From positions 28,086,001 through 28,150,000 of the forward strand of contig OZ249446.1 in assembly GCA_965235115.1 (NCBI GenBank): a stretch of 64,000 nt of DNA, read 5' to 3'. Below are positions 16,580-59,620 of this stretch, piece by piece (within the stretch, counting starts at the first letter, position 1; the number at the start of each line of letters is the position of its first letter). Origin of the DNA: Laetmonice hystrix (lineage: Eukaryota). Below the pieces are notes generated by a model that saw only the letters and a list, made by a program, of their open reading frames with translations, did not search any database and was not told the DNA's origin. A program made the position numbers and the translations under genes.

Positions 16580-16580
16580 A

Positions 16581-17694: not shown

Positions 17695-17697
17695 TTA

Positions 17698-26004: not shown

Positions 26005-26783
26005 TGTAACGTCCCTGGCCTCGTTGCCAGGTTAGCTACTGGGCTCCCAAGTCCCTTAATATGTGACACTGGATGAAAAGAACACAAACACACATATTGG
26101 AGTTGAGAAAGAAATGGTTTTATTCAAATACGGGTAGTGATAAACCTATCCTGCCTCTGGTCTAAAATAGGGTTAGTACTTCTCGTTGTATTCCTGTCGT
26201 AAAAATGAATATAATGAATATACAAGACTCAAGTCTTGTCTGAGATCCGAATATTCCCGGCGGAGAACTAACCTAAAAGATCTAACATCTTGTTTATAAT
26301 GAATTGGATCTGAATGTTCACATTCAGCTTTTTGGCCTAAATAATCAGAAAAACCCTTACTCTGGCCTTAGGCTTATAGCCATATCTGACGAACAGACCT
26401 TACACGTATTTCCTATACGTTTCAAGCTCTGACGACAGCTTGGCATAAATTGCTGGTACAAGCATTCTAATACATGCCTATTGGCACGTCTACCGTACAT
26501 ACCTGGACTTAGAGGTAGCCATTTCAGTGGTTTCGGCTTGTAAGTTACTCAGGGCAGTATTCCGTCCCTTCTTAGCTGGAGGTTTAACGACACTCCCAGA
26601 CTTATTGCAGAGACCGGGCTTTTATATCAGAGGGATATGCATATGCATGCCAGGGGAGCCAATGAGAATACGCTGGCTGACGGCGCCACTGGGCCCTGGT
26701 CAGCTGGGGGTGCATCGCCGGGGTAGCGACGTGCTTAGTGCACATGCACTTGACACAGACGTTGGGCCAGCCCAATCGTCACA
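26005..26783 (-). repeat. Gypsy-B 3' LTR (779 bp)
   Basis: Differs from the 5' LTR by about 4 substitutions, a 3-nt indel and replacement of 42 nt by CATC at about 26713. Confidence 0.96.
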
Positions 26784-27077
26784 CACCTCCCTTTCCAAAA
26801 AGACATATGTTACACATATAACAATAGTTACTATCCTACACTAAGTTCTAGACCTACGGGTACAATAAAGGAGCAGCATGGGTTAGGGACGACCCACTGT
26901 CTTTGACGATAATCTGAAATCAAGACAAGAGTCAACAATACAAGTCAAACAAAATGATCCAGGTTCAAATTTTAATAGGCAATATGCACAGGGTGCTCCA
27001 GACAACTCTAATTAGTCCTTTAAATGTCCCGATAAATGTTCCTGTTTGGTTGAGACACAGACAGTTAAGCCTACAAG

Positions 27078-28184: not shown

Positions 28185-28200
28185 CTTTGTTTTATTTCAG

Positions 28201-31200: not shown

Positions 31201-31989
31201 TTCCTTATCTGGAGTGCACTCCAATTCTGTGAAATGTGATATGGGTTGTAGTAATGCCACAGCTACACCTTTCTTAAGAGTTACTGGTTCATTTCGGAGA
31301 TTGATAACGGTTAAAGGTACGGTTTTATTGGCTGCATTCACTAAAGCCTTACCAAAGATCACGCCTGACCTATGAGTTATGGATGCCAATCCTTCTACAG
31401 CTCCTAACCCTCGAGGTATTGGCTTCCTAGAATGTTTAGCCTGAGCAATGCCTTCTACCATCATCTGACTGTCAGCTGGTATATGTATGGTGTTAGCTAA
31501 ATGTACCCTGCAACAACCTTCATTGTCCTCCCTTTGCAATTGAATCTTTTGAGATCCTATCTCTAAGATACCTTTAGAGAAATCAAGCTTTGGTTGAAGC
31601 ATGTCAATGAAATCTAATCCAAGCAAACCTTCCAAACTTCCTAGGTTTGAAACTAATACAGGATGTTTATATGACACATTGCCAAGTCGGATTATAGCCA
31701 TGAATTCACCTAACACATCCATTGAACTTCCATCAGCTAAGGTAAAGTTCATATTACATGGATGTAGCTGTACATCAGTCATTTTGATTTTCTTGTAAAT
31801 CGACTGATTAATTATCGTGCAAGACGCGCCAGTATCAACAAGAAATTTAACTTTGTGCCCGTTCACTGGAACACTCATATACCATCCATTTTGACTGTGT
31901 ATCTGAAGCATTTGTTTCTGAATATTTGGCCCTTTAATCTGTCGACTGGCTGAGCTGACGGCCTCCAGGTCAGCCAATTTTAGTTTTCC
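28201..31989 (-). pseudogene. pol: Gypsy-B pol (PR-RT-RH-IN), disrupted in integrase
   Basis: FLVDTGAS, YLDD, LDTDASND, HHCC. A 1-nt frameshift occurs at about 29162. EKVAI is then joined directly to RLGCPRQLHSDQG at about 29101, deleting the first catalytic Asp region. pol is in the -1 frame relative to gag at GGAAAAC-TAA (31983-31989). Confidence 0.93.
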
Positions 31990-33257
31990 GAATTAGAGGC
32001 TTCAGCTTGCTCTTTATACTTTGTACAGTTTCTTTGAACATGACCTAGTTCCTTACAGTACCAGCATCTAAGATTGCGATGCCTATTGCCTAAACCAGAC
32101 CTCTGCTGTTGACTCATTGCCAGTACTGGAGGTTTCTTAGCATATGTGCTACATTCATTGACCACTTCAAAATCTACTGCTAGAGTGATGGCATCATTCA
32201 TTGTCTTTGGATGGTGGAAATGTACATGTTGCCTCATTGAGTGACTCAATCCGGTTTTAAATTGATCGAGCAACCACTCTTCTTGGGCCTCTGTGCTCTG
32301 ATTGGGAAATGCCCTTTTAACCAATCTTCTCAATTCATAACCATAGTCAATTAGTTTCTCATTTGGTTTTCTGAACCGTTTTCTGAATTCGGATTTATAC
32401 ACATCTTCCCTGCCAGATGGGTTAAACCTATGTGTTAGTGCTTCCACCATAGCAGCATAACTTAATTGTAAGGCTCTGGGCAAGTTGGTTATAGTGCTTC
32501 TAGCCTCTTTTGTCATGCTCATACCCAGTTGAATACCCTTTTCACTTTCAGACCACTCGTTCCATTGGCTTACTTTCTCAAAATAGTCTAAGTATTCCTG
32601 CAAATCACTTTCACCAGTATACATCTCAGGGTCTTTCTGACGCCTCTTGATGTGTTGCTGAGATTGTGATTGCACAGGAAAATAAGACTCAACCCTTTGT
32701 GGTTGATTCTGAATAGGTAGTAAATACGCCATTGGACTTGTGGGTTGAGTGTGGATAGGTGTTGAATACACCATTGGACCTGCTGATTGGGTGTGGATGG
32801 GTGTTGAATACACCCTTTGGCCTGTTGGTGTTTGCACACTTGTAGGATGTGCACTGTACCATCCGGCAATGGGAGGTGGTGGAGTGATCCAGGGACTGGT
32901 GTAATTAGTGGCTTGACCTGTATTAGGCATTTGACTGGGAGTTCCAGTACTACACACTGGACCTTTGTTACTGTATGTGGGCGTGGTTACTGTGTAAGTC
33001 TCATGAAGAGTGCCAGCTGAGTAACTGTACGCAGGTATGTGATTCTCGTGAATTGATTGGTAAGTGGGTACGGGTGCACTTGTTATTGGTAAAACTGTTT
33101 GTGCTCTCAACAGTGTTGAGTCTTCTAGGTCAGATTTTCTAACCACCCGTTCTTCCTTGTGCACAGTTAAAGGATCCCTGAGTGTATCGCTGTCAGTACT
33201 GTTTTATACGTGAAACCATTGTGAAACCGTTTCGTGTAATGATCTCCACCAAGACAT
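31980..33257 (-). pseudogene. gag: Gypsy-B gag with a premature stop near the N terminus
   Basis: KDPEMYTGESDLQEYLDYFE capsid-like motif; CWYCKELGHVQRNC knuckle. An in-frame ATG at 33257 (MSWWRSL...) is separated from the 394-codon ORF by one TAA at 33204-33206. Confidence 0.88.
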
Positions 33258-33381
33258 CTTGACAGTATTTTCAATTATTAAATACAGTAAATATCAATTT
33301 AATTCAAACTGATTACTCAGCTAAATATATGAACTCAGTTAAATGCAGGATAATAACAAAATAGCCTGTAAACCAATTATT

Positions 33382-33578
33382 GATCACAGTACCAATTTGT
33401 GTAATTCTCCACATTTGGGCATAGTACTAAATTGTGTTTCAGTTGTGTCTCTCCATCCAGAATTAGTCACGGTACCAAACTGTGTAATTCTTCGGAATTA
33501 CTTCAAAATTGGTCGCGGCACCAAATTGTGTAATTCTTCAGAATTACTTTAAAATGGTCACGGCACCAAATTGTGTAA
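33382..33578 (-). promoter_or_regulatory. Tandem tRNA-His-type PBS cassettes (45-nt period)
   Basis: TGGTGCCGTGACC (33556-33568), TGGTGCCGCGACC (33511-33523), TGGTACCGTGACT (33465-33477) and degenerate TGGTACTGTGATC (33382-33394). Each is preceded on the - strand by TTACA-CA(A/G)(T/A)T. Confidence 0.88.
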
Positions 33579-34387
33579 CGTCCCTGGCCTCGTTGCCAGG
33601 TTAGCTACTGGGCTCCCAAGTCCCTTAATATGTGACACTGGATGAAAAGAACACAAACACACATATTGGAGTTGAGAAAGAAATGGTTTTATTCAAATAC
33701 GGGTAGTGATAAACCTATCCTGCCTCTGGTCTAAAATAGGGTTAGTACTTCTCGTTGTATTCCTGTCGTAAAAATGAATATAATGAATATACAAGACTCA
33801 AGTCTTGTCTGAGATCCGAATATTCCCGGCGGAGAACTAACCTAAAAGATCTAACATCTTGTTTATAATGAATTGGATCTGAATGTTCACATTCAGCTTT
33901 TTGGCCTAAATAATCAGAAAAACCCTTACTCTGGCCTTAGGCTTATAGCCATATCTGACGAGCAGACCTTACACGTATTTCCTATACGTTTCAAGCTCTG
34001 ACGACAGCTTGGCATAAATTGCTGGTACAAGCATTCTTATACATGCCTATTGGCACGTCTACCGCACATACCTGGACTTAGAGGTAGCCATTTCAGTGGT
34101 TTCGGCTTGTAAGTTACTCAGGGCAGTATTCCGTCCCTTCTTAGCTGGAGGTTTAACGACACTCCCAGACTTATTGCAGAGACCGGGCTTTTATATCAGA
34201 GGGATATGCATATGCATGCCAGGGGAGCCAATGAGAATACGCTGGCTGACGGCACTGGGCCCTGGTCAGCTGGGGGTGGGATACTTAGTCATGGGTGGCT
34301 GCACACACAGGCGATGTGTGGCCGGGGTAGCGACGTGCTTAGTGCACATGCACTTGACACAGACTTTGGGCCAGCCCAATCGTCACA
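33574..34387 (-). repeat. Gypsy-B 5' LTR (814 bp)
   Basis: Direct repeat of 26005-26783; adjacent to the PBS. Confidence 0.96.
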
Positions 34388-34494: not shown

Positions 34495-35284
34495 CACTGC
34501 AAAAAGGACCGTCTGCCTGCGAGACGTTTTGAGAGACGCTGTTCTTGTCACACCTGGGGAGACGGTCTAAAGTGTTTAGTGTTTACAAAATGTACACCGT
34601 CTCATGAAATGTCCACCGTCTACAATAATGTCGGAAAAAGGAAGTGTATACAGAATGTCAATCGTCTCACAAAATGTATACTGAGAGGGATATTCACCTA
34701 GATTCTCCGTGGTAGAGAATATTAAAAAAATAAATAAAAAAAAAGTATGCCAGTGTGGGATTCGAACCCAATACCCTTGTCACTAAATTCCTACGCTCTA
34801 CCACTGAGCCAACCTTGCACGTGAGTAAGTTTTAGAGTGTTGCTGTAAATGAATGACCACAGTGGTAAAGAACTATGCATGACGTCATACCACGGTTACG
34901 TCACGGCAGGCTTATAAAGGATAATAATCAGTCGCAGAGTTGGCCCAGTTTCGACTGAACCAACTGAACCGTTTCATTTCATACGCGAGTCCGGTGACAG
35001 TTGACACAATTTCTTATTAACGTTAGACACTGAACAATTAGGAGACCATCCTGTACCATGAGACAGTTGACAATTGGAGGACACTTTAGTTTAGAACTTT
35101 GTCTCTGAATCGTTTTTTTGTGTTATTTAGTGCTATTTGGTGTACTCAAAACGTGTGTACTCATAAAATAGCGTCTCAAAAAAACGTTCAAAAAAGGTTA
35201 CCGTCTATATCTGGACATTCAGTAAACATTAACGTTTTTTCGGCGTCTAAATTTCGACGTTCTGTAGACATCTTTTTTGCAGTG
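34495..35284. mobile_element. 790-bp non-autonomous CMC/EnSpm-like element
   Basis: TIRs cactgcaaaaag / cttttttgcagtg; 2-bp TSD AA (34493-34494, 35285-35286). Removing it restores the satellite sequence tatctttgatccaaaataaatatagac. Confidence 0.88.
34747..34820 (-). pseudogene. tRNA-derived sequence (SINE-head-like) inside the CACTG element
   Basis: The - strand reads gtgcaaggTTGGCTCAGTGGTAGAGcgtagg...GGGTTCGAATCCcacactggca, with A and B boxes. The anticodon and acceptor stems do not pair. Confidence 0.7.
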
Positions 35285-36338
35285 AAAATAAATATAGACG
35301 AGGAGGACAATGGCTAAGTGGCATTCATTCGAATGTTCATGAGGAGGGCAGTGGATAAATATCGTCGTGAAAGTAATATGGACGAGGGGGCAGTCGTTAA
35401 AGAAGGCCCGACAGAAACATGGATGAGGGGCACGATGGCTAAATATTACTCTGTAGGAATATTACTGAGAGAAGCAGTGACTCAATGGGGGTTATAGGAA
35501 AAATGCACGAAGGGGTTGTGGCTCACTGCAAATATGAACCAGGAAGACAATGGAATGTTCATGAGGAGGGCAATGACTTAATATTTGGTAAAATGTAACA
35601 TGGAAGAGGGGGCAGTCGTTAAATATGGCCCCACAGAAACATCGACGCGGCGGGGGGGGGGGGGGGGGGGGGCTATGGCTATCTATGACCCAAAAGAAAT
35701 ATGGACCAGGAGGACAATGGCTAAGTAGCATTCATTTGAATGTTCATGAGGAGGGAAATCGATAAATATCGTTGAGAAAGTCATATGGACGAGGGGGGGG
35801 GGCAGTCGTTGAATATGGCCCACAGGAACATCTCCGCGCCGTTGGGGGTGGGCTATGTCTATCTTTGACCCAAAATAAATATAGACCAGGAGGACAATGG
35901 CTAAGTGGCATTCATTCGAATGTTCATGAGGAGGGCAGTTAATAAATATCGTTGTAAAAGCAATATGTACTAGGGGGCAGTCGTTAACTAAGGCCAGACA
36001 GAAACATGGATGAGGGGCAAGATGGCTAAATATTACTCTGTAGGAATGTTACTGAGAGGGGCAGTGACTCAATCGGGGTTATAGGAAATATGCATGAAGG
36101 GGTTATGGTCCACTTCAAATATGAACTAGGAGGACAATGGAATGTTCATGAGGAGGGCAATGACTTTGTAATATGTAACATGGAAGAGGGGGCAGTCGTT
36201 AAATACAGCCCCACAGAAACATCGACGCGGGGGGGGGGGGGGGGGGCTATGGCTGTCTATGACCCGGAAGAAATATGGAACAGGTACTCGCGGCGGGGGG
36301 GGGGGGGCTATCCATGACCCAAAATATTCAAAATATTC

Positions 36339-37050
36339 AAGATGGCCACCAAATCCAAGATGGCCGTCATCTAAACGGGAAATGGCCATGTTTCAGCTGC
36401 AAGTGGAACTATATTGATCAAGTTTGAGCTGATTTCCCGTTTAGATGACGGCCATCTTGGATTTGGTGGCCATCTTGAATTTTGGAAATGTCAGAAATGT
36501 ATTCAGCATCTAGATAAACTTCGGAAGCGACTCAAATTTTATCAAAATCAGGCCGCTGGCAGCTGAAATCCAGAAATCCAGCTATTTCAGTTAAATTGCT
36601 GCCATCTTGGATTTTTCGGCCATCTTGAATTTTGAAAATGTAAGAAATGGAATCAGCATGTCACAAATGGATTTAGCCTCTGTATAAACCTCGAAATCAG
36701 CTCAAACTTGATCAATATAGCTCCACTTCCCGTTTAGATGGCGGCCATCCTGGATTTGGTGGCCATCTTGAATTTTGGAAATGTCAGAAATGTATTCAGC
36801 ATTTAGATAAACTTCGGAATCGACTAAAATTTCATCAAAATCGGGCCGCTGGGAGCTGAAATCCAGAAATCCAGCTATTTCCAGTTAAATTGCCGCCATC
36901 TTGGATTTTTCGGCCATCTTGAATTTTGAAAATGTAAGAAATGGATTCAGCATCTGGATAAACCTCAGAATTGTCTCAAATTCTATCAAAATCTGTCCGC
37001 TGGGACCTGAAATATGGCCCGGTTCCAGTTAAATGGCGGCCATCTTTGAT
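36339..37050. repeat. Fold-back / tandem block rich in GCCATCTTG
   Basis: 36339-36385 is the inverse of about 36433-36478; about 36402-36436 is the inverse of about 36694-36727; a roughly 290-bp direct duplication covers 36440-37020. Confidence 0.8.
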
Positions 37051-39905
37051 TTTGGGCTGTTACTCACTTATGCAATATGATAGAAACCTACACCCGGGCT
37101 CATTTTGCCCCTGAAATATCATACTTTTAGAAAAAATAGGGTGTACAATGTTGCCAGGGGGTGCAACAAAACCAAAATTTTAGGACGCTGGCTCCCAGAC
37201 TATTATCACTGGCTACACACTGATCATCGTAACGCGCGTTACGCTGATCCAAGATGGAGGAAGGCAGGTCTCGCTTCAACTAAAACCAGGCGTATTTCAA
37301 GCAGTTCCGTGTCTCTGATTCATCTATAAGACGTCCTAGTTGTTTATTGCAATGGCGGCATCATGTTTGGTGAACCTCGGCGCCTGAGATTGCCTAGAAA
37401 TCTCAAAAAACGCTCCGAAAATTTTCGCTGTGATACCCGTAACGCGGACAAGGCATGTTGACAAATGATACCCGTAACGCGAATTATTGATACCCGTAAC
37501 GCGACTCATTGCTGGTTAGCCTGCCATTCACTCGTAAGCTGTACTGCCTTTATTCTTCATCTTTCAAGTAGGAAAACCATTCTCACCAATTTTCGTTTGA
37601 AGGAAATTTAATTGTTTGTGTTACTTGAAATCTTGTGCAGGTTGTGGCAGAGTTTTGACAGTTCAACTTCATGTAGAACGGAGTACGTTAGCGGTAGCCA
37701 CGCTCGCAAACGCGAATACTTCCAGCCTGTGGCGAGTTCCACTGCCAAAATAAACCACCAAATTCGCCACGCCTGCAAATTCCAGCTGTCTCCAGTTTAT
37801 AGCCCAGGTCCCCCCCCCCATGCACACCTGATCCACCACTGATTGTGGTTGGAGCACGTGTGTCGGTGTGACATGTGGGTGGTCAGAGACCAGGGTGACC
37901 GACCCACCCGACCCGGTCACTTCGCCAGGCCTAGCCTCTAACATAGGCCGTGTGTATACACGGCCTATCCTCTAGCGAACGGGCTACGAGACCAAACGTT
38001 CAACCCGCAAAATGAATGTGCGCCCGCACCTCTTCCATCACCTCAAATAAAAGATTGCCTTTACCTTCAGCTACTGAGCCCAATGAACTTACTTGGTGTT
38101 CCTCTAAGCAACAGATTCGGCCAATTTTCCAAACCAAGCGACCACTTTCCATAGTCTTACAACCGGCGCCATTTCTGTAAACCCACATCCGGGGTCAAGC
38201 TCACGAAGGGAGCAGTCATTTCAGACGTTGGCTATTAGTTTGGCGCCATAATGGAGGAATTGTTGTTTGGTCTAGAATAATGAGTGCTCCCCTGCTGGTC
38301 GCCAGTGTGTACGTTTTGAACATGCGCAGTAGAACAAACAGTATGGCGGCTAACGGCAGTGAACCAGCGCGATTCGGAATTTGGAAAGTCTGATTTATTA
38401 AAACTTTGGGCAAAAATCCTCGGAAAAGTGTGCAGCAGAGGAACAGAAGATGGGCTGCGTTAGAATTGACACCTCAACTGGCAGTAGTTACGATGGATTT
38501 TGCACAGCGAGTGATTGACATAGGAGGTAGGGTTTTTCGCGTTAACGCTGTCTGTCCCTACACTGGGACGATACTCCGTCTACGCCAGGCCATGCCAGCC
38601 GCCCGTAGGTATGCATCTGTTCCCCCTAGTCTACTACGGACTACCCCAGGTCAGGCCGGCCCTCAGTACTGGTCCGTCTCCCCTGGGTCCAGTCCATCTG
38701 GGGTGAGTTTATGACAGATGCCAGTCAGCCTGTAGGAGTAATATAGGCCTAAATGATATCCCGATTACCTGGCAGGCTGAGTGTGCCAGGAGAGGACAGG
38801 CGACACATAGCATGGCTGAGGTCACATGGCATGAAGGTGGGGAGGCAGCTCGGCCGCTCAGTACGGGGGTCGGGGGTGTGAGGGGTGGGGGCTGTCAGGG
38901 GTGGGGGGTCGCTGTGATGAGAGGGTATATAGCCTAGGTACCCGTCAATTTGGGCCAGGCCTCCTCTGAGACATCTTCATCGTATGTAGGTGTAGATCTA
39001 CTGTACTGGATCCCAATATTCTTGCTGTTTAAGAGGGCCATGCACTTGTGTAGAGTTATCCTCGAGATATAGGACAGCTTATTCCCCCCCAAAAAGTTCA
39101 CTACACACAGCTGGCAAATGAAAGTACATGTACTTTCATTTATACAGAGAAATTAAGACTGTATAATACATGTATAATGAACTCTGGTTACCTAAATAAA
39201 AAACATTAAAACAACTGTGGCTAAAACTTTTTCCTTGTGGCTAGTTCTTTTCCTCAGTTGTTAGCCACTGTGGCTAATACCCAAAATTCACTAGCGTACT
39301 CCCTACTCGGAGGAGTCAGGGTGCTCTACCCCGGGGTACTGGGGAAGGACAAAGCATCTCGATCTCTCATGGTGCCTGCCAGGCATGTCTTAGATTCGTG
39401 TCCCCGCCCTGGGGTCCACACACACTCTGTATGGTAACACCTATAGTATAGTATAGTATCACACACGCTGTTAATCCGGGCCCTATTATATACGTGTACC
39501 TCATGGTTTTACCTTCATACTGAAGTAGATAATGCTCATTACAAAGTTGAGATTCATTATCAGATCACGAGCCGATGTTGAAAGTCGTCTACTCGTCTAC
39601 GTAAAAACCTTTAGGCTCAGTGAAAAGTTTAGGTGCCGCGTTACGCCTATCCTGTCACCAAATTAAACTTGCGTTATGGGGATCAGCGCTGCGCGTTACG
39701 GGTATCATCGCTAAATCTTCTGCGTCCATTTTCTCTTAATCTACGCCCCTCTAGGACCCCAAACTGAGACAAACGGCAGGCACACATTGTTATCATGATA
39801 TTCAGATGTTGTTTTATGTTATTGATGCACCGTAGCCCTTGTAACTTGAACAAAAACACGCGAAGCGAGCATCGGGATCCTCCATCTTGGATCAGCGTAA
39901 CGCGC

Positions 39906-41024
39906 TGTAAAGTCTACCAACTTTTTGAATTTCCCACCCTCTCAGATATTTGAAGTTTTGCCACCTCTCACTAGAGGGCAGTGGGCGGTCATAGCCGTCC
40001 TTGCAGGAAGATGGCGCTACACGTTTATTGAGTATCTTTTAATAATTATAACCTAATTATAATTATGTAGGTAATACATTTATATAGGTAGTTCTGGCAC
40101 CGTGTGTTTTAATAGGTATGTTTATGAAAGTAATACATGTATAATTATGTTGGTGTAGGTACAAGTGGTCAGGGTGAAGCTGAAGTTAGATTTCTCAAAT
40201 ATACGAGTAGTATTTTGTAAAGCTTCACATTTATTGTTATTATATTTTACAAGAACAGTGCTGCATGTACAATTATGTTTGTGTAGGTACAAGTGGTCAG
40301 GGTGAAGCGTTCCTGGCAGAAAGTGATATATTTTAAACTATAGTAATAATATAGAAAGCCTGACATTGTTGTAAGGTACAACTAGAGTATGAACCTTGGT
40401 ACACTATCTATATGTTATCAGGAAGGGTCAGTCACTGGACAGTCCAGCTGGCCAGCTTCACGCGACAATAGGTTATCTGGAAGGAACGGTCAGAGTCCAC
40501 CTAAGGGTTTGAGACCATGTTCACATTTTACTCTTTATATTTACCATAGAGGGCGCTGTTGCTATTATAGTTAACCCTTGGATATTACCAGGTTTAAGCC
40601 ACTAGATGGCACTGTTGTTCACAATATGAACACACCTTAACTTCCAGTGATCATGAGTGATTTGTATCTCAGTATCAAGGTCCAGTATTGATAGGCAGGG
40701 ATACTGGACCCAAGTTGTATAAATAGGGAGAAGAAATAAAGCTTATTAGACTCGACTTCACCACCACCTCGGTCTCATCGTTCTCCTTTGACGCTACAGC
40801 ACCGTTAGGATGCGGTTGGGCTCTCCACCTTCAGGCTCATGGTGAAGCCAGGTAACTAGCCTACTTAGTATACTACATTCATTCGGCCCTTTAGGCACTA
40901 AGTAGGCACGAGTATGAAATGCTCATCTAAATTCCAAATTTATTAATTGTGTTTGTTAGTTGTCACGAAACACAACTAGCTGGTGACCACAAGTTAAACA
41001 AAGAATCGGGTCACAATCTTTACA
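39906..41024 (+). repeat. Gypsy-C 5' LTR (1119 bp)
   Basis: TGTAAAG...CTTTACA ends; TATAAATA at 40718-40725; AATAAA at 40735-40740; an internal direct repeat of about 43 bp at about 40138 and 40266. Confidence 0.97.
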
Positions 41025-41025
41025 T

Positions 41026-41043
41026 TGGTGACCACGATGGGAC
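41026..41043 (+). promoter_or_regulatory. Gypsy-C primer binding site, tRNA-Trp-like
   Basis: TGGTGACCACGATGGGAC begins 1 nt after the LTR. The first 8 nt match the tRNA-Trp complement TGGTGACC(CCGACGTGA); there are mismatches after that. Confidence 0.7.
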
Positions 41044-41156
41044 TCTATTGATGTAAGTGTGGACCGACAGGACGCAGCCCACTGAGTAGAAGGAAGTCAG
41101 CTACGTGGTTCCCCATTCAAAAGTAGTAGGACGAAGTACAAAGTAGAAGTACAAAG

Positions 41157-41214
41157 ATGGATGAACAACAACAGCAACAACTGCAACAGCAACAACTGCA
41201 ACAGCAGCAACTGC

Positions 41215-41251
<37 letters not shown>

Positions 41252-42266
41252 GGAAGAGGCGCCACTCACAGCGGCAGAGATGCAACGGCTACAACAGCAC
41301 CGCTTCAATCTAGAAGCCACTAGACAAGTTCGACATCGACTAGAACAGCACGCAAAGAGGATTGGAGTGGCAGATGGTGCGAACCGGGAAGGCCTAAGAG
41401 AATGGATCCGTGGAATTGACAACGCGAGTGCATGGGTAAATGCTAGCGACAGCATGCTCCTAGAAATGGTAGGCTACCTCGTCACGGGAAGCTTGGCAAC
41501 AATGGTAAGAAATTATATTGTTGAATCCTTGCCCGATGAACGCTCCTGGGAACATATAAAAACGGCAATCGTAAAAGCTTTCCTGGATGAAGATGAGAAA
41601 GAATACCTTCGCGCTAAGGTAGAGAAAATAGTGCAAAATCCGTATGAGGATTCCAGGGAATACGGTAGACGTTATAAGGAAGCAGTGACAAGGGCTTACG
41701 ATGCTGAAGAGTTGGCGCTACCGCTAGTAAAGGATCGGCTTATTAAACAGTACATCCAAGGATTACAAAATAGGACAGCACGCACCCAAGTGCACTTCCA
41801 ACGACCATCCACCTTAGATGGCGCCATAGATTCTGCCAACTCAGCCGCACGAGCAGTGGGTCTAGCAGAGGTAGCAGAACGCTATGAAGAACCGATGGAT
41901 ATAGGGACCTTCCCCAACATGAAGCCAGCAGCAAGAGAAAAGAAAGAAAATGAAGAGTACACCCAACTCTTGAAGACAGTACAGGGAGAAATGAAATCAA
42001 TTCGAAAACTACTGGAGAAGCGTGGTATCAGTGAAACGGGAAGAGCTTCACAAGAGACAGGATATTCTGAAGTGAGAAGAGCACCAAGACAGACAGGATA
42101 TTCTAAACCAGTGCGCACACCCGTTCAAAGAACCGAGGACAGGAGCAATAAGAAGTGTTATCACTGCCAGGAGCTGGGCCACTTCGCTCGTGATTGCCGG
42201 AAGAGACTGGAGACTGCCGTGCAAGCAGCAGTGGAGTCACAGATAAAACGTCTTGATTTAAACTAG
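41157..42266 (+). CDS. gag: Gypsy-C Gag (369 aa) with N-terminal polyQ
   Basis: LREWIRGID...YLVTGSL capsid-like region, EEPMDIG motif, CYHCQELGHFARDC knuckle. Confidence 0.95.
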
Positions 42267-45200
42267 GACGGGCACCGGATCGCCGCATATGTATTTTCAT
42301 TGTGCTAGCAGGAGTCAGAATGAACATCTTACTAGATACCGGTGCCAGTAAATCATTGATCAAGGCGGACAAATGGATTGCTATCTGTAGAAATAGTCAT
42401 CGAGTACCACTGACAACCCCGGGAGTGAAGCTGCGAGGATTAGGAGGTGCAGACATCCCCACGAGAGGGAAAACTGAAATACCTATCTACGGTAGGAACG
42501 TAGAATTTCAAGTCACTGATACATTGCAGCATGATGCACTATTTGGTACAGATATTTTGGAAGCTCTGGAAGCAGAAATAAGCTATAAGAAGCGTAAGGT
42601 GTTCTTTCAAGGAAAGGCCCACAGATACAAGACAGCAGGAGATGGAGACTCAGATGTAGCGGCAGTATATTCCGAAATGGATAAATGGATACAGGCGTAT
42701 CCCACCGTCTTTGCCACCGAAGGAACAGCTTTGGGATGCACTGATGCCGTGAAGATGTCCATAGACACAGGTGAGAACCCCCCAGTCAAACAACGACCTT
42801 ACCGGCTCCCATTGGCAAAACGCCGAGTAGTAGATGAGGAAATCAAAAAAATGTTAGAAGAGGATATAATCGAACCCAGCAGCTCCCCCTGGGCATCACC
42901 ACTGCTACTGGTACCGAAAAAGGATGGCACCATGCGATTCTGTGTCGACTATCGCAGGTTAAACTCGGTCACCAAAAAGGACGCCCACCCCCTCCCACTC
43001 ATTCAAGACATCTTCGATACCTTGGCAGGCAGTAAGATCTTCAGCACATTAGATTTAAAAAGTGGTTACTGGCAAATCAAGATGGCGGAGGACAGTGTAG
43101 AAAAAACAGCCTTTGCTTGCCATCGGGGATTATTTCAGTTTAAACGGATGCCCTTCGGATTAACCAATGCACCGTCAGTATTTCAACGTTTAATGAACAA
43201 AGTCCTCGCACCATACCTCGGCCAATTTGTGTTAGTTTTTATCGACGATGTCGTTATATTCAGCCGCACGGAGGAAGAACATGAGGAACATCTTAAATTA
43301 GTACTCGAGGCACTGAAATCATATAGACTAAAGGTAAAACCTTCCAAGTGCACCATTGGAGCCCAGGAGCTTCGCCTTTTAGGCTACATCATTACGGCAA
43401 ATGGAATCAGTGCTGACCCAGACAAGACAAATGCAATACGCAAAATGGCGCCACCACAAACTGTAAAAGGGGTTCGGTCATTCTTAGGAATGACCGGATA
43501 CTATCGACAATGCATACCTAATTATGCCAAGGTATCCCACCCTCTAGTCCAACTCACGAAAAAGAATGTGCGTTTTGAGTGGGCTAAGGAACACCAGGAT
43601 GCCTGGGTGCACCTACGCCAACTCCTCACGTCGGATCACGTAATGGCTTACCCACAGCTGAATAGACCATACAAACTCTATACCGACGCTTGTGAGTACG
43701 CCATTGGTGCTATATTGGTGCAAGAAGACGACATGGGCGTCGAACGTCCCATTCAATACATCTCCAAGCAACTCTCGGGAGCTCAACTCCGTTGGGCAAC
43801 AATAGAAAAAGAAGCCTATGCTGTTGTTTATGCTTTGAAGAAACTCCGCCCATATCTCTATTCCTCTGAGTTCACCATCTTCACGGACCATAAGCCATTA
43901 AAATCATTATTTCTCTCAGAAATCAATAACACCAAGATACAACGATGGGCTGTGTTGCTAGCAGAGTATGGAGCACCGATACAATACAGGAAGGGCCCAA
44001 ACAACATCCGGGCAGATATGTTGTCGAGGATAAAACCGCAAGTGGATCAGGATGGAGAACCGGAACAGGCGCTCGACCTTTGTGCGATTGCAGGTGAAGA
44101 GGTCCTGTGGGAGTTTGACCAATTGGAAAAGGAGGAAATCCGGAAGGAACAAGAAACTATGCCAGAGTACACCCAGGGTACAGAAGATGACAGCAACTAT
44201 GTTCTGCATGACGGACTGCTCTATACTCTAAAACCCCCACCAGGAAAAGCGGAATACCCTCGCCTTGTTCTACCCCCAAGTACACGATTCCGGGTAATAC
44301 GAAGAGCACATGCAGAAGTAGGACACCAAGGCATGAGGAAAACCTTGGACAGGCTCCAAGAAGCCTATTGGTGGTCAGGACAACGGAATGACACCTATCA
44401 CCTCCTATCACGTTGCGCAAAATGTAGTGTCAACAGAAACACTACAGAAAAGCCACCCCCTACGGAGATGCCGGTAGCTCAATATCCATGCCAAATAGTG
44501 GGAATGGACATGTGTGGTCCATTTCCTATTTCCCCAGAAGGGAATAGATACATGTTGACACTAATTGATCACGCGACTGGATGGGTAGAGGTGAAACCAC
44601 TACCACAAAAAACTGCTGCAAATATCTTGAAATATCTGGAAACTGAGTACATCCCTCGTTACGGGCCACCGGAAGTACTAATCACAGACCGTGGCCTTGA
44701 GTTTCGTAATGAACTAGTCGTTGGCTACCTTAAACGACTGGGAGTGGATGTACGGCACACAACACCCTACCACCCTCAGACGAATGGAAAGATAGAACGC
44801 TTTCATCGGACCCTTAAGGACTTACTGCGTAAACTTGTGAATGCGCGAAGTACGGAGTGGGAACAATGCCTAGGACCAGCACTATGGGCTCACAGGGTTA
44901 GCACATCCGTGGTAACTGGCTACTCACCGTACTTTCTCGCATACGGACGACAACCCCCAGTACCATACCAGAAACTGCTGAGACGAACAGAAGGGACGGA
45001 AACAGATATCCTAGCAGACCGACTAGACGAATTAAGTAAAGCTTTCAAGGAGGCTGCGAGGAGGACAGAAGAAAGCCGAAAATACAACAGAGAACGTCTA
45101 CAAAAACAGGCACGGGCCGATGTTTTATCAATTGGAGACCACGTGGTAGTTTTAGCACAGGAAGGGTCACCGTTGGACCCGAAGTGGGACCATGGATACG

Positions 45201-45628
45201 TGATAACTCGGATACAAGGTCCTGTTATCTCAGTGGTTGGACGGCAAAACAAAAGGCGCACTATCAATCGTGATAAGGTCAGATTGGCTGACCCTGACGC
45301 GGACTGGGATGGCCTACGACCTCGTCTGACTCGAACACAGCGAAAGAACGTTGCACTGGGACGAGTCAATATCCCTATCAGTGTTCCGGGTCAAACCGGA
45401 CCACCAGTTGATGATAATCCCCCGCACTATCATAGACGGGCCATTAAAAGGAGGCTGTTCAGCGAAGACGACGCCATTCCTGCGAAGTCTCCCTTCCACA
45501 TGAGGTTACGTCCCCAGAAACGGCCCAGCTCGGAAGAACAGTTAGAAGCAAAAAGAAGATGCATCGCCACGGTTGCAGCATTCTGTGGTGCACCCTCGTC
45601 TACCTCGTCTCCAGGGGGAGACCGGTGA
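42257..45628 (+). CDS. pol: Gypsy-C Pol (PR-RT-RH-IN), reached by a predicted -1 frameshift
   Basis: Slippery heptamer T TTA AAC (42257-42263) directly precedes the gag TAG, and the -1 frame is open into LLDTGAS. Motifs FIDD, YTDACEY, HAEVGH...CAKC, DMCGP / TDRGLEF / IERFHRT. Confidence 0.96.
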   Translation, partial: FKLGRAPDRRICIFIVLAGVRMNILLDTGASKSLIKADKWIAICRNSHRVPLTTPGVKLRGLGGADIPTRGKTEIPIYGRNVEFQVTDTLQHDALFGTDILEALEAEISYKKRKVFFQGKAHRYKTAGDGDSDVAAVYSEMDKWIQAYPTVFATEGTALGCTDAVKMSIDTGENPPVKQRPYRLPLAKRRVVDEEIKKMLEEDIIEPSSSPWASPLLLVPKKDGTMRFCVDYRRLNSVTKKDAHPLPLIQDIFDTLAGSKIFSTLDLKSGYWQIKMAEDSVEKTAFACHRGLFQFKRMPFGLTNAPSVFQRLMNKVLAPYLGQFVLVFIDDVVIFSRTEEEHEEHLKLVLEALKSYRLKVKPSKCTIGAQELRLLGYIITANGISADPDKTNAIRKMAPPQTVKGVRSFLGMTGYYRQCIPNYAKVSHPLVQLTKKNVRFEWAKEHQDAWVHLRQLLTSDHVMAYPQLNRPYKLYTDACEYAIGAILVQEDDMGVERPIQYISKQLSGAQLRWATIEKEAYAVVYALKKLRPYLYSSEFTIFTDHKPLKSLFLSEINNTKIQRWAVLLAEYGAPIQYRKGPNNIRADMLSRIKPQVDQDGEPEQALDLCAIAGEEVLWEFDQLEKEEIRKEQETMPEYTQGTEDDSNYVLHDGLLYTLKPPPGKAEYPRLVLPPSTRFRVIRRAHAEVGHQGMRKTLDRLQEAYWWSGQRNDTYHLLSRCAKCSVNRNTTEKPPPTEMPVAQYPCQIVGMDMCGPFPISPEGNRYMLTLIDHATGWVEVKPLPQKTAANILKYLETEYIPRYGPPEVLITDRGLEFRNELVVGYLKRLGVDVRHTTPYHPQTNGKIERFHRTLKDLLRKLVNARSTEWEQCLGPALWAHRVSTSVVTGYSPYFLAYGRQPPVPYQKLLRRTEGTETDILADRLDELSKAFKEAARRTEESRKYNRERLQKQARADVLSIGDHVVVLAQEGSPLDPKWDHGYVITRIQGPVISVVGRQNKRRTINRDKVRLADPDADWDGLRPRLTRTQRKNVALGRVNIPISVPGQTGPPVDDNPPHYHRRAIKRRLFSEDDAIPAKSPFHMRLRPQKRPSSEEQLEAKRRCIATVAAFCGAPSSTSSPGGDR

Positions 45629-47394
45629 CTGCCGATTTGTTTACGGAAGATGGCGTTCTCGTGGAGGAGGGCGGAGAAACAAGAATAGTGTCAGCCTTAT
45701 GGACAGCTGTTATCGTGGTACATCCTCCATGCCGCCCAAATATCTCGGAATGGTCGACAGACGTAAAACGTGCCATCTCAAAAGCCGGAACCCAAGTGAC
45801 TGATAACGACAAATCTAACTGGTATTTCCGTTTAAATTCATTACATATAAAGCGGGATCTCGATGTCGGAACAAGCGTCCGGCTCGGTGGTGTGACCCCC
45901 CCGACAAGTCGCCCCACTCGAGTCAGACGTGGCTTGATCAACTTTGTCGGGAAGTTGAGTAAGGCATTGTTCGGCACCGCTACCGTTGATGATATTAACA
46001 TTTTAAAAACAGCTCTTGATAAAACTCGCAAGAAAATGACCATCCTTCATCATGAAAGTGCACATATGTTGAGTGTTATCAACCAAACTAGAAGATATAT
46101 TCAAGAAAATAGACAAGATTTACGAGAGTTACAATCCGAAACAAGTAAACTTTATACATTGGCCAGTACAAATGCCCGAAAGGTTCAGGCTTTGCAGCTA
46201 TATATGGGAAAATTAACTTTACAGAGGCAGATTGACCAGACCATTGAACAAATGGAATTTGCAATCAGAGATTTTCATACACAAAAACGTATTTTTGACG
46301 ATCAGGTTTTTCAATTGCAACAAGGTTGGTTAACGGAAAATGTGTTACCTCCACGGTACTTAATGGAGATTATTAATGAACTTAACCAGCAGGGACATCA
46401 AACGCTCAGTTTGAACTGGTATTATCAATTTATCCATACAAATTTACTATGGCACACTAACGGAGAGTTTGCGTTCCGCGTGGTAATCCCAGGAGTGACA
46501 AATGGGAAGTATTTACGGTTTTTCTTAAAATATTTTAAGGTCCCCCATGATGACAATCATGTGCGGAGTTTTACAGGTCAAAATAGTATTGTGGTCAGCA
46601 CGACCTCTTCTACGTCGTTTGCTCCGGACTCATGTGCTGGACATGATCCGTTGGTATGTCAACCAGAGAAGGAATATTTTACTTCTTCATGTGAGGATGC
46701 TCTTGTAAACGGGTTAATATCACCCAATTGTACAATATTAATCTCGAAACGGTCCAATCATACCGTGGATATACTCCGAAATGCTGATAATCCAAACTCG
46801 GTTGTCATTGTGACTTATACACCTACTAAGGCAGTGTTGCGATGTAGCGGCCGGCTGGCACGACATTTGGACATTATGGGTCCCCAACGGACTGAGGTGC
46901 CAGGCGGATGTGTGTTAGAAGGACCGAATTGGAGAACTCGTGGTTTTCAACTTGGACAAAGCACCATGCATGTACGTCCACCAGTGGTTCCTCTATTCCC
47001 TCGTATTAATCTTACCTGGCCAACGTTTGTGACGCCAGAAGTGCGCGATAAACTGTCGTTTCGCAAACGGGTGGAAGTGCCACTCCTATCCATGAAAGAC
47101 TGGACGGCAGAAGAAACGGACTCATCCGAATGGATTCTTCCTAATCCTCATATTTGGCTTCCAACTGGTGGAATTGTAGTTGTAGTGATTATTTTACTTA
47201 TTATTTTTATCATTTATTGGTTTACTTGTAAAACCAAGAAGTCTGTATCAGGAAACGTCGTAAATGTACCGAATATAATTCCGATGTCTGCACCGGATAC
47301 TATTAATGTTGTACAGACGCCTATTAAATTAAATGACATGGATATCAAGTATCCTTATCGTACGGCCTCCATGGCTCTCCAATCATTGTCTTAA
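45559..47394 (+). CDS. env: Envelope glycoprotein (611 aa), errantivirus / baculovirus-F-like class I fusion protein
   Basis: Signal-peptide-like N terminus; furin site RVRR followed by the fusion peptide GLINFVGKLSKALFGTAT; heptad repeats; Cys-containing ectodomain; sequons NIS, NQT, NCT, NHT and NLT; TM IVVVVIILLIIFIIYWF plus a cytoplasmic tail. Confidence 0.93.
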   Translation: MHRHGCSILWCTLVYLVSRGRPVTADLFTEDGVLVEEGGETRIVSALWTAVIVVHPPCRPNISEWSTDVKRAISKAGTQVTDNDKSNWYFRLNSLHIKRDLDVGTSVRLGGVTPPTSRPTRVRRGLINFVGKLSKALFGTATVDDINILKTALDKTRKKMTILHHESAHMLSVINQTRRYIQENRQDLRELQSETSKLYTLASTNARKVQALQLYMGKLTLQRQIDQTIEQMEFAIRDFHTQKRIFDDQVFQLQQGWLTENVLPPRYLMEIINELNQQGHQTLSLNWYYQFIHTNLLWHTNGEFAFRVVIPGVTNGKYLRFFLKYFKVPHDDNHVRSFTGQNSIVVSTTSSTSFAPDSCAGHDPLVCQPEKEYFTSSCEDALVNGLISPNCTILISKRSNHTVDILRNADNPNSVVIVTYTPTKAVLRCSGRLARHLDIMGPQRTEVPGGCVLEGPNWRTRGFQLGQSTMHVRPPVVPLFPRINLTWPTFVTPEVRDKLSFRKRVEVPLLSMKDWTAEETDSSEWILPNPHIWLPTGGIVVVVIILLIIFIIYWFTCKTKKSVSGNVVNVPNIIPMSAPDTINVVQTPIKLNDMDIKYPYRTASMALQSLS

Positions 47395-47433
47395 GTTTGA
47401 TAGTATGTATCAAACTAATGAGTGGGGAAGGTA

Positions 47434-48945
47434 TGTAAAGTCTACCAACTTTTTGAATTTCCCACCCTCTCAGATATTTGAAGTTTTGCCACCTCTCACT
47501 AGAGGGCAGTGGGCGGTCATAGCCGTCCTTGCAGGAAGATGGCGCTACACGTTTATTGAGTATCTTTTAATAATTATAACCTAATTATAATTATGTAGGT
47601 AATACATTTATATAGGTAGTTCTGGCACCGTGTGTTTTAATAGGTATGTTTATGAAAGTAATACATGTATAATTATGTTGGTGTAGGTACAAGTGGTCAG
47701 GGTGAAGCTGAAGTTAGATTTCTCAAATATACGAGTAGTATTTTGTAAAGCTTCACATTTATTGTTATTATATTTTACAAGAACAGTGCTGCATGTACAA
47801 TTATGTTTGTGTAGGTACAAGTGGTCAGGGTGAAGCGTTCCTGGCAGAAAGTGATATATTTTAAACTATAGTAATAATATAGAAAGCCTGACATTGTTGT
47901 AAGGTACAACTAGAGTATGAACCTTGGTACACTATCTATATGTTATCAGGAAGGGTCAGTCACTGGACAGTCCAGCTGGCCAGCTTCACGCGACAATAGG
48001 TTATCTGGAAGGAACGGTCAGAGTCCACCTAAGGGTTTGAGACCATGTTCACATTTTACTCTTTATATTTACCATAGAGAGCGCTGTTGCTATTATAGTT
48101 AACCCTTGGATATTACCAGGTTTAAGCCACTAGATGGCACTGTTGTTCACAATATGAACACACCTTAACTTCCAGTGATCATGAGTGATTTGTATCTCAG
48201 TATCAAGGTCCAGTATTGATAGGCAGGGATACTGGACCCAAGTTGTATAAATAGGGAGAAGAAATAAAGCTTATTAGACTCGACTTCACCACCACCTCGG
48301 TCTCATCGTTCTCCTTTGACGCTACAGCACCGTTAGGCCAAAAAAAAAAAAGTTTCGTTTCTTGTCCTTTCATATAAAAAAAATGGTGCGGTGACGCGGC
48401 TTTTTTTTTTTTTTCATCTTTCTTTTTTTTTTTTGGATGCAACTAGACAACGGCCGATTCTTCGAATGCAATTGCTGTTGGGTACATAAATCTTGAAGAA
48501 AAGACTAATGCAATGATGTTCAATGTTTTAGAATGTGTAAAACTCGCATAAAAAGCAATAAGACTAACAGAAAGGCGCCAACGCCAAAGAACCGTTGCAA
48601 CGTTCTGTCCCAGCGCTACACTGCCCACCATATGAAGCAGTCGGATTTGAAAAAAAAGACTTGACGCGGGGGTTTTTAGGTGACGCGCGCGGGGACAAGA
48701 AACGAATCTATTTTTTTTTTTGGCCTTAGGATGCGGTTGGGCTCTTCACCTTCAGGCTCATGGTGAAGCCAGGTAACTAGCCTACTTAGTATACTACATT
48801 CATTCGGCCCTTTAGGCACTAAGTAGGCACGAGTACGAAATGCTCATCTAAATTCCAAATTTATTAATTGTGTTTGTTAGTTGTCACGAAACACAACTAG
48901 CTGGTGACCACAAGTTAAACAAAGAATCGGGTCACAATCTTTACA
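47434..48945 (+). repeat. Gypsy-C 3' LTR (1512 bp including a 390-bp MITE and its TSD)
   Basis: 1119 + 390 + 3 = 1512; about 3 substitutions relative to the 5' LTR by eye. Confidence 0.96.
48336..48725. mobile_element. PIF/Harbinger-type (Tourist-like) MITE, 390 bp
   Basis: TIRs ggccaaaaaa...gtttcgtttcttgtcc / ggacaagaaacgaatc...ttttttggcc; TTA TSD (48333-48335, 48726-48728). The empty site accgttaggatgcgg is present in the 5' LTR at 40801. Confidence 0.95.
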
Positions 48946-50339
48946 GCGCGTTACGATGATCAGTGTGTAGCCAGTGATTATAGGAAAAATGCACGAAGAG
49001 GTTGTGGCCCACTGCAAATATGAACCAGGAAGACAATGGAATGTTCATGAGGAGGGCAATGACTTAATATTTGGTAAAATGTAACATGGAAGAGGGGGCA
49101 GTCGTTAAATACGGTCCCATAGAAACATCGACGCGGGGGGGGGGGGGCTATGGCTGTCGATGACCCAAAAGAAATATGGAACAGGTACGCGCGGCGGGGA
49201 GGGGGGGGGGGGGCTATCCATGACCCAAAATAAATATAGACCAGGAGGACAATGGCTCAGTTGCATTCACCAGAATTTTCATGAAGAGGGCAATAGATAA
49301 ATATAGTTCAAAATGTAATATCGACTAGGGGGCAGTTGTTAAATATGACCCTATCCAAACATTGATTCGAGATACTATGGCTAAATATTGCTTTCTATGA
49401 ATTCCGCTAAGTGGGACAGTCATTAAATGGGGGTTACAGGAAACATAGACGAGGAGGACAATGGAATGTTCACGACGAGGGCAATCACTAAATATGGTAA
49501 CATGGAGGAGGGGGGGGGGCTGTCGTTGAATATGGGCCCACAGGAACATCTACGCGGGGGGAGGGACTATGGCTATCTTTCACCCAAAATAAATATAGAC
49601 CAGGAGGACAATTGCTAAGTGGCATTCATTCGAATGTTCATGAGGAGGGCAGTTTATAAATATCGTTGTAGAAGTAATATGTACGAGGTGGCAGTCGTTA
49701 AATAAGGCCCGACAGAAAGATGGATCAGCGGGACGATGGCTAAATATTACTCTGTAGGAATGTTACTGAGAGGAGCAGTGACTCAATGGGGGTTATAGGA
49801 AAAATACACGAAGGGGTTGTGGCCCACTGCAAATATGAACCAGGAAGACAATGGAACGTTCATGAGTAGGGCAATGACTTAATAATATGTACTAGGGGGC
49901 AGTCGGTAAATAAGGCCAGACAGAAACATGGACACGATGGCTAAATATTACTCTGTAGGAATGTTGATCTATGACCCAAGATAAATATGGAACAGGTACG
50001 CGCGGCGGGAGTATGCAAAACGGCGTATGAAAATATAAATAAAAGCTGAGAAATGGCGAAAACCCTTTATAACAACGTGAAAACCTAAGTAAAACCTTGA
50101 AAAAGCAAAACATTTTTTTTTTTTTTTTATTGAGCATTTTTATCCAGGATATCCAACTCGGCTACTTCACCGTCACAAATGTCGGATCCTGCTTACAGTT
50201 AAACGGTACAAATGAAGTAAAACGTATCATACAGGTGCACACGTCCCCTAACTCCAGATTACATTAACTTTTTTATTACATTAATCAATATAGATTATCT
50301 AAAAGTAATTGTCACTAATCATTGTTCATGTCCCTAATG

Positions 50340-50880
50340 GGCCACCGTGCTACTGGCTCTTTGAAGTTTTTCAGCCAGCGCAGGCCCGCCTGGTCAGCAC
50401 CAACTTTAAATTTACTACCCCACAAGAAATTTCTGAAGGCTTTAATTAATTTCCCAACTATAGCAGCAATTGTTCAAACTGAAACTTTCTGAAACATTTA
50501 CTATCATAGCAAATTACTTTTTCGCCTGATCCCTTATCCTGACCTGCGCTGATTCCAAAACCACTGGCATCTACGTCCAGGATGAATTTATCAGCCGAAG
50601 TGGGATACGCCGATATCTGACTGCTGGTGAGGTAGTGCTTTAGTTGTTGGAATGCTGCCTCGCACCTGTTATGCCAGTTGAACATACAGCCCTTCTCCGT
50701 GAGGCCATCAGTGGAGGGGGGGGGGGCTGCAAAGCTGACGCAAAGTTGGTCATAAACTTCCTGTTGCAGGACGCCAGACCGAGGAAGCTGCGCTCGTCTG
50801 AGACATGCACAGGGGTGGGCCAGTCTGCCACAACTCCCACGTTTCGTGGGTCAATGACACTTGGCCGCCTGGGCGCTTTC
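50340..50880 (-). pseudogene. pol: Old gypsy pol fragment (RT thumb to RNase H)
   Basis: DWPTPVHVSDERSFLGLAS, then CEAAFQQLK...FILDVDASGFG, in shifted frames. Confidence 0.85.
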
Positions 50881-58460: not shown

Positions 58461-59620
58461 GGAATTCCAAGTGCTGTCCCAAACCTCACCGACATGACAA
58501 GCACTGGCAACCAACAAGGACAAGTGGAACGCCATCTCATGCACTGAGGCCATCTTGATGAGCGCGGAAACGGGAGGCGTCAACTCAAGCACATTGCCAT
58601 CATCGCTAAACGCAATTACATCCGAGTGCTGTCCCAAACCTCACCGACATGACAAGCACCGGTGACGACCAATAAGGACAAGTGGAACGCCATCTCATGC
58701 ACGTAGGCCATCTTGATGAGCGCGATTAAGGAAACGGGACGCGTCACCTCAAGCACATTGCCATCGTTGATGAACGCAATTACATCCGAGTGCTGTCCCA
58801 AACCTCACCGACATGACAAGCACCGGTGACGACCAATAAGGACAAGTGGAACGCCATCTCATGCACGTAGGCCATCTTGATGAGTGCGATTAAGGAAACG
58901 GGACGCGTCACCTCAAGCACATTGCCATCGTTGATGAACGCAATTACATCCGAGTGCTGTCCCAAACCTCACTGACATGACAAGCACCGGTGACGACCAA
59001 TAAGGACAAGTGGAACGCCATCTCATGCACGTAGGCCATCTTGATGAGTGCGATTAAGGAAACGGGACGCGTCACCTCAAGCACATTGCCATCGTTGATG
59101 AACGCAATTACATCCGAGTGCTGTCCCAAACCTCACTGACATGACAAGCACCGGTGACGACCAATAAGGACAAGTGGAACGCCATCTCATGCACGTAGGC
59201 CATCTTGATGAGTGCGATTAAGGAAACGGGACGCGTCACCTCAAGCACATTGCCATCGTTGATGAACGCAATTACATCCGAGTGCTGTCCCAAACCTCAC
59301 TGACATGACAAGCACCGGTGACGACCAATAAGGACAAGTGGAACGCAATTACATCCGAGTGCTGTCCCAAACCTCACCAACATGACAAGCACCGGTGACG
59401 ACCAATAAGGACAAGTGGAACGCCATCTCATGCACGTAGGCCATCTTGATGAGCGCGATTAAGGAAACGGGACGCGTCACCTCAAGCACATTGCCATCGT
59501 TGATGAACGCAATTACATCCGAGTGCTGTCCCAAACCTCACCGACATGACAAGCACCGGTGACGACCAATAAGGACAAGTGGAACGCCATCTTATGCATG
59601 TAGACATTTTGATGAGCGCG
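58461..59620. repeat. 164-bp tandem array (about 7 units)
   Basis: Near-identical units produce the repeated ORFs at 58616, 58780, 58944, 59108 and 59349. There is one 77-nt shortened unit and diverged edge units. Confidence 0.96.

Follow-up and report, generated by a model that had tools for sequence, protein, structure and literature searches.

Endogenous retroviruses have their invertebrate counterpart in Ty3/gypsy retroelements that carry an envelope gene (env). This envelope permits, in Drosophila, transfer from somatic to germ cells. The Drosophila elements gypsy, ZAM, Idefix and 17.6 combine a Ty3/gypsy pol with a -1 frameshift and a 4-bp target-site duplication. Malik, Henikoff and Eickbush reportedly linked the Env of insect errantiviruses to the baculovirus F protein in 2000. 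Here we analyse a stretch of 64,000 nucleotides (contig OZ249446.1, positions 28,086,001 to 28,150,000 of the forward strand; the whole stretch is called the window below, and all coordinates refer to it). We consider it highly probable that its segment 39906-48945 is an endogenous provirus of an env-carrying Ty3/gypsy element, an "errantivirus" in the broad sense and of the group named "ancient", which recently inserted into an inverted repeat of a DNA transposon.

The closest described systems are the "ancient errantiviruses" with F-type Env. According to the survey of Chary & Hayashi (preprint 2023, eLife 2026, PMC13524379), intact and often multicopy gag-pol-env gypsies with F-type or gB-type Env occur in most metazoan phyla; the survey contains no such elements from Echinodermata or Porifera. 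The same authors describe an RNase H followed by a mini domain in the "ancient errantiviruses" and a duplicated "pseudo" RNase H in nearly all elements of the insect group, and they note that the "ancient" group is also carried by some insects (PMC13524379). Env of the Drosophila gypsy group resembles baculovirus F and is thought to be produced from a spliced RNA (PMC10541861 for ZAM). More distant parallels are the nematode Cer/Tas elements and Atlas virus (PMC9094657). These are likewise invertebrate long terminal repeat (LTR) retroelements with an acquired viral fusogen, but their envelopes are phlebovirus Gn-Gc-like (class II) or herpesvirus gB-like (class III), and some of them belong to BEL/Pao.

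The locus is composed of the following parts:

37207-48976, no strand: surrounding CACTG...CAGTG DNA transposon of about 2.7 kb, not counting the LTR element, with 55-bp terminal inverted repeats
39902-39905, no strand: left copy of the target-site duplication GCGC, 4 bp
39906-48945, plus strand: whole LTR retroelement, 9040 bp, including an insertion nested in its 3' LTR
39906-41024, plus strand: 5' LTR, 1119 bp, with TG...CA ends
41157-42266, plus strand: gag, 369 amino acids, with a poly-Gln N-terminus, a Retrotrans_gag capsid-like domain and one CCHC zinc knuckle
42257-42263, plus strand: slippery heptamer T TTA AAC within the last gag codons, ahead of the stop
42268-42349, plus strand: predicted stem-loop, 4 nt past the slippery site, -28.7 kcal/mol, z -2.6
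42257-45628, plus strand: pol, read in the -1 frame with respect to gag over 1123 codons, encoding protease, reverse transcriptase (RT), RNase H, mini domain and integrase
42911-43393, plus strand: RT, Pfam RVT_1, E 1e-40
43580-43969, plus strand: RNase H, Pfam RT_RNaseH / RT_RNaseH_2, with a fold matching Ty3 RT-RNase H
44129-44269, plus strand: small mini domain located after RNase H and before integrase, modelled as two helices with three short strands
44273-44833, plus strand: integrase, with an HHCC zinc-binding domain and a D,D35E catalytic core
45559-47394, plus strand: env, 611 amino acids; its first 70 nt are shared with the end of pol
45919-45930, plus strand: furin-like motif R-V-R-R at residues 121-124 of Env; the stretch after it is hydrophobic and resembles a fusion peptide
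47173-47229, plus strand: Env transmembrane anchor, residues 539-557, the segment of highest hydropathy and a helix in the model
47434-48945, plus strand: 3' LTR, 1512 bp, of which 1119 bp are shared with the 5' LTR and the rest is the nested insertion
48946-48949, no strand: right copy of the target-site duplication GCGC, 4 bp

Both LTR copies start with TG and end with CA, and the pair is bordered by a short target-site duplication, as in other Ty3/gypsy elements (Metaviridae). Over their 1119 shared positions, the LTRs differ by three substitutions, one in a 904-bp block and two in a 220-bp block. LTR pairs of such length and identity cannot arise by chance. A 45-bp direct repeat is found within the 5' LTR (40136-40180 and 40264-40308). 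The element sits in the right inverted repeat of the CACTG transposon, within a near-palindromic stretch, and the partner inverted repeat (37207-37261) is uninterrupted. Because this partner repeat holds GCGC only once, the duplication is more than a 1-in-256 coincidence. The two flanks of the element were each compared with the partner repeat separately, without making a joined sequence. The left flank matches at 28 of 28 positions and the right at 37 of 38, and the matches overlap by exactly the four bases GCGC. The transposon itself is bounded by a 2-bp AT duplication (37205-37206 and 48977-48978). It contains no recognisable transposase between 37207 and 48976 and is therefore probably non-autonomous.

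The same flanks speak to another possible explanation, that the locus is misassembled or stems from a contaminating exogenous virus. Such an origin would agree with the lack of any identical protein on record elsewhere. However, the element is embedded in host repeats on both sides, its target duplication agrees with the partner repeat of the surrounding transposon, and its 3' LTR has received an insertion from a repeat family with another copy in the window. We therefore find an artefact or a contaminant scarcely credible, and the endogenous provirus remains our preferred reading.

The nested insertion is MITE-like (resembling miniature inverted-repeat transposable elements). It is about 0.39 kb long and has inverted ends of about 33 bp, GGCC termini and a 3-bp TTA duplication; a 79-bp fragment of the same family, 97% identical, lies at 17695-17771. 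Since a full copy is nested in the 3' LTR, this MITE-like family has moved after the arrival of the LTR element, and some time must have elapsed since integration. The LTR divergence, K = 0.0027 (3 differences per 1119 positions), corresponds roughly to 0.1-1.3 million years if the host has a rate between 1e-9 and 1e-8 per site and year, as is assumed here. The copy is young and recently inserted.

A first-pass annotation of the window had described an intact and recent env-bearing gypsy with complete gag, pol and env, a canonical -1 slippery site, a target-site duplication and LTRs differing at about 3 of 1119 sites, lying next to a CACTG element with a 2-bp duplication. Most of this description is borne out by our analysis, including the env-bearing Ty3/gypsy identity, for which Pfam domains and the F-type fold of Env speak. 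The word "intact" has to be limited. The copy is young and its three genes are structurally complete, but because the nested insertion interrupts the 3' LTR, which measures 1512 and not 1119 bp, the element is not strictly intact.

None of the three reading frames contains an internal stop. In the -1 frame, a stop codon stands directly before TTTAAAC, and the frame is open from the first base of this heptamer for all 1123 codons of pol. The stability of the stem-loop downstream was equalled in only 1 of 200 shuffles. We thus have a heptamer of the form X XXY YYZ that is read in the gag frame, an open -1 frame and a predicted downstream structure, a combination from which ribosomal frameshifting is predicted. 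Two relatives, L001 and L004, likewise show the -1 arrangement. They retain only the A-AAC-stop part of the slippery site, so the canonical heptamer is specific to the present element. As a separate observation, the start of gag (41157-41260) encodes a run of about 30 Gln residues from CAA/CAG repeats, which places a microsatellite in frame at the N-terminus of the capsid protein.

The domain order of pol (protease, RT, RNase H, integrase) is that of Ty3/gypsy elements. Matches above the curated Pfam cutoffs were obtained for Retrotrans_gag, zf-CCHC, RVT_1, RT_RNaseH, Integrase_H2C2, rve and Baculo_F. The protease has a D-T-G motif, the Asp and Gly of which are common to 37 of 37 relatives. 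In the alignment, the catalytic Asp and Glu residues of RT and integrase are shared by all 49 relatives; all 50 sequences have the D-E-D-D residues of RNase H, and the HHCC ligands likewise do not vary.

Group placement depends on the segment that separates RNase H from integrase. A model of this bridge (predicted local distance difference test, pLDDT, 88.9) consists of a canonical RNase H, a disordered linker, two helices with three short strands, and then the HHCC domain. Only a single RNase H fold is detected in the region, and it is closest to that of Ty3. In the predicted structure, the bridge therefore has the canonical RNase H and C-terminal mini domain of "ancient errantiviruses", and the duplicated "pseudo" RNase H of the strict genus Errantivirus (insect group) is absent. 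From the Drosophila gypsy group, the element is set apart by this description, not by direct sequence comparison.

One could still imagine an ordinary member of the genus Errantivirus, from the gypsy/ZAM/17.6 group, residing in an insect genome. Its F-type Env with a Baculo_F match would be expected there, as would the gag-pol-env order, the -1 frameshift and the 4-bp duplication, all of which occur in the Drosophila elements. The form of the bridge contradicts this view. In addition, the best 120 pol matches include no named insect protein; the sole named animal match among them is a pseudoscorpion protein with 38% identity. We regard an ordinary insect errantivirus as improbable and suggest, on the predicted structure, that the element belongs to the "ancient" group. 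A non-insect host, for which the RNase H and mini-domain form is the basis, is plausible but unproven.

The third open reading frame, located after pol and inside the LTRs, has the layout of an F-type glycoprotein: a signal peptide, then an ectodomain and a membrane anchor. It begins with a hydrophobic N-terminus and carries five N-glycosylation sequons. Six cysteines of its ectodomain are conserved, and so is its membrane anchor. The first position of the R-V-R-R motif is basic in 11 of 12 relatives and the last position in 12 of 12. The match to the Pfam family Baculo_F is weak yet above the curated cutoff (27.2 versus 24.1 bits); 13 of the 14 members of the Env family match the same profile, with a best E of 1.2e-12. 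These features agree with the literature description of errantivirus F-type Env (PMC13524379).

The class of Env is settled by fold search and not by sequence searches of PDB: a single-sequence search gave no match there, and a profile search gave only a marginal match to a "fusion protein" entry. An AlphaFold model built from 14 sequences has a mean pLDDT of 67.5, with a core of 85-93 at residues 30-100 and 190-460. In a Foldseek search against PDB, this model resembles the fusion proteins of respiratory syncytial virus (RSV) and parainfluenza virus 3 (PIV3), with E about 1e-12 and probability 1.0. Among the predicted viral structures of BFVD, it matches best with baculovirus F / Ld130 (E 2e-21), followed by chuvirus-like, arlivirus-like and paramyxovirus F0 proteins. 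At moderate model confidence, Env thus combines an F-like fold with a basic cleavage site and a hydrophobic fusion peptide downstream of that site. Its profile match and modelled fold assign Env to the F-type class I fusion glycoproteins. With baculovirus F (Ld130) and the pneumo- and paramyxovirus F proteins, it shares the class I fold, a furin-type site before the fusion peptide, a long central helix and a C-terminal anchor. It differs from them in sequence, with 10-16% identity, and in its carrier, which is a retroelement here and a DNA or negative-strand RNA virus there. It also differs from the envelopes of Cer/Tas and Atlas virus, since the present Env is of class I and F-type and the element is a gypsy.

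Could this frame be a mere chance open reading frame, or a trapped host gene, instead of the envelope gene of the element? The low score of the Baculo_F match, which spans only about 80 residues, would be the argument for it. Against it, a corresponding frame also lies 3' of pol in relatives from four other sources, and the Env fold matches viral F proteins across about 500 columns. Conservation extends to the furin-like site, to six cysteines of the ectodomain and to the membrane anchor, and Env clusters at E <= 1e-30 are numerous. This explanation is already contradicted by the evidence, and we give it next to no credit; the frame is treated as env in what follows.

An exhaustive HMMER search of 1.8 billion representatives returned 766 Env clusters at E <= 1e-3, of which 112 reach E <= 1e-30; none of the clusters is more than 43% identical to the present Env. 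The nearest database relatives have 63-64% identity in pol and 40-44% in Env. Wherever their context is available, gag, pol and Env follow in the same order, and several of the relative clusters hold 17-27 member sequences. Contigs with relatives of the env element or of a GC-rich gag-pol element of the window come from ERZ26222911, ERZ25767047, SRR31167957, GCA_044240325.1 and GCA_046766235.1. The first of these, an ENA assembly, is the source of the closest relatives of both the env element and the unrelated GC-rich gypsy 25 kb away, which suggests that ERZ26222911 contains a relative of the host.

Compared with the "ancient errantiviruses" (PMC13524379), the present element has the same gag-pol-env content within LTRs, the same Env layout of signal peptide, furin site, fusion peptide and anchor, the same succession of RNase H and mini domain, and the same occurrence as a young copy. 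What differs is the sequence: the distance to the nearest sequences found makes it a distinct and, by this measure, probably a new family. The element fits the known kind of env-gypsy in every feature tested, and we count it as a further member of that kind. The novelty implied by the first-pass annotation is not supported, as env-gypsies with F-type or gB-type Env have already been catalogued across most metazoan phyla (PMC13524379).

Apart from the genes, several short signals were recognised:

40718-40740, plus strand: within the LTR, TATA-like TATAAATA (40718-40725) and then AATAAA (40735-40740)
41026-41043, plus strand: 18-mer resembling a primer-binding site, starting with TGG, one base past the 5' LTR
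41053-41058, plus strand: GTAAGT in the leader before gag, its sole occurrence in the element and a candidate splice donor
47420-47431, plus strand: run resembling a polypurine tract, two bases ahead of the 3' LTR

By analogy with Drosophila gypsy, TATAAATA may act as the TATA box of a promoter, and AATAAA as a polyadenylation signal located at or before the transcription start. The 18-mer at 41026-41043 has the form and the place of a tRNA primer-binding site. Between the end of env and the 3' LTR there are just 39 nt, the purine run included. A pyrimidine-rich stretch with a terminal AG precedes the env start. Together with the GTAAGT of the leader, it could provide the splice signals for a subgenomic env RNA, as in Drosophila gypsy.

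Several points weigh against an endogenous provirus of the "ancient" group as we have described it. Firstly, a tRNA scan of the window and of the relatives' loci revealed no tRNA gene, and hence no tRNA complementary to the 18-mer; the primer-binding site and polypurine tract of the first-pass annotation are confirmed in form and place, not by a matching tRNA. Secondly, the splice signals are only consensus-like matches. Thirdly, the 3' LTR is broken by the nested insertion. Fourthly, an exact look-up found no identical Env on record, and the window holds a single copy. Fifthly, assignment to the "ancient" group is based on predicted structure and a verbal description, not on a phylogeny with reference elements. 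Finally, the aromatic residue found in the RT active-site motif of the present copy occurs in 0 of 49 relatives, and for this reason the copy may not be fully functional. The catalytic motifs, which had been annotated as complete, are indeed so for the protease D-T-G, the RT aspartates, the RNase H D-E-D-D, the HHCC domain and the D,D35E core, with the variant RT motif as the exception.

Some of these points would also suit a somewhat different history, in which the family is active now or was so recently and the present copy is a non-functional relic, its genes open merely for want of time. With only three differences between the LTRs, open frames say little about constraint. The unusual RT residue, the nested insertion and the missing second copy within the window can all be added on this side. 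On the other hand, the catalytic aspartates, the zinc ligands and the landmarks of Env are all in place, the RT variant is a conservative aromatic exchange, and no gene is hit by the nested insertion, which sits in the 3' LTR. We take the relic seriously as a possibility, while leaning towards a copy that is more than that. In either case, the identification as a young env-carrying provirus is retained.

The surroundings of the element give some hints about the host. CpG observed/expected is 0.72 for the window, which makes a vertebrate host unlikely, given the strong CpG depletion of vertebrate genomes. No host gene was recognised in the window by Rfam and tRNA scans or by Pfam scans of 30 open reading frames outside the LTR elements. 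A neighbouring tyrosine recombinase (YR) element bearing an SGNH domain, which the first-pass annotation had taken as a hint at the host, was not found by Pfam scans among the open reading frames of at least 95 amino acids in the window. The window is made almost entirely of repeats: three young LTR elements, the CACTG transposon, MITE-like copies and satellite-like arrays.

The second young LTR retroelement is the GC-rich one (7450-17261, minus strand). Its LTRs of 683 bp are 99.56% identical, and it has 61% G+C amid surroundings of 40-47%. It carries a single fused gag-pol reading frame of 2120 amino acids (9368-15730) and an 84-bp in-frame tandem repeat at 14726-15325; its closest relative, in ERZ26222911, is 62% identical. 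The third, a gypsy at 25999-34387 (minus strand), has LTRs about 98.9% identical and one in-frame stop in pol. After its integrase follows a reading frame of 368 amino acids, in which a C2H2-like finger and a coiled coil are recognised. This frame was considered as a second Env and rejected, having no F-type Env similarity and no membrane segment.

Other repeats include a satellite-like family with units of about 180-360 bp at 24445-26004, 35201-36326 and 48978-50009, which flanks the third gypsy and the env element. Further repeats, at 58566-59598 and 36434-37032, are a 164-bp tandem array (5+ copies, 88-97% identical) and a repeat of about 150 bp. At 17841-20404 (plus strand), there are two adjoining open reading frames of 315 and 540 amino acids without a Pfam match; in the second, longer one, an acidic repeat of about 25 amino acids that includes cysteine occurs about eight times. 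A degraded RT-RNase H fragment of an older retroelement remains at 50461-50850 (minus strand; Pfam RT_RNaseH_2, E 2e-10).

A possible life cycle of the env element can be proposed as follows. The 5' LTR would drive a full-length RNA, from which Gag, with its capsid and zinc knuckle, would be translated directly. Gag-Pol would arise by -1 ribosomal frameshifting at U UUA AAC, aided by the downstream stem. A host tRNA would prime reverse transcription beside the 5' LTR, and the purine run ahead of the 3' LTR would prime the plus strand. Integrase would then insert the DNA copy and generate the 4-bp duplication. Env would probably be made from a spliced subgenomic RNA, as a type I membrane protein with a signal peptide. 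Cleavage at the furin-like site would expose the fusion peptide, and Env, acting as a class I (F-type) fusogen, could pass particles between cells. Of this picture, our analysis shows the anatomy, the identity of the domains, the fold class of Env, the target duplication and the young age of the copy; transcription, frameshifting, splicing, cleavage and any activity or transfer between cells today are inferred.

Taken together, a young copy with three open genes implies that this lineage moved recently in the genome of its host. The general phenomenon has already been published, and the present copy adds a data point to it, not a concept. It is unlikely, in our estimate, that the source organism belongs to a phylum without reported env-gypsies (Echinodermata or Porifera) or to a lineage outside the survey. 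If that were true, the known host range of env-gypsies would be extended.

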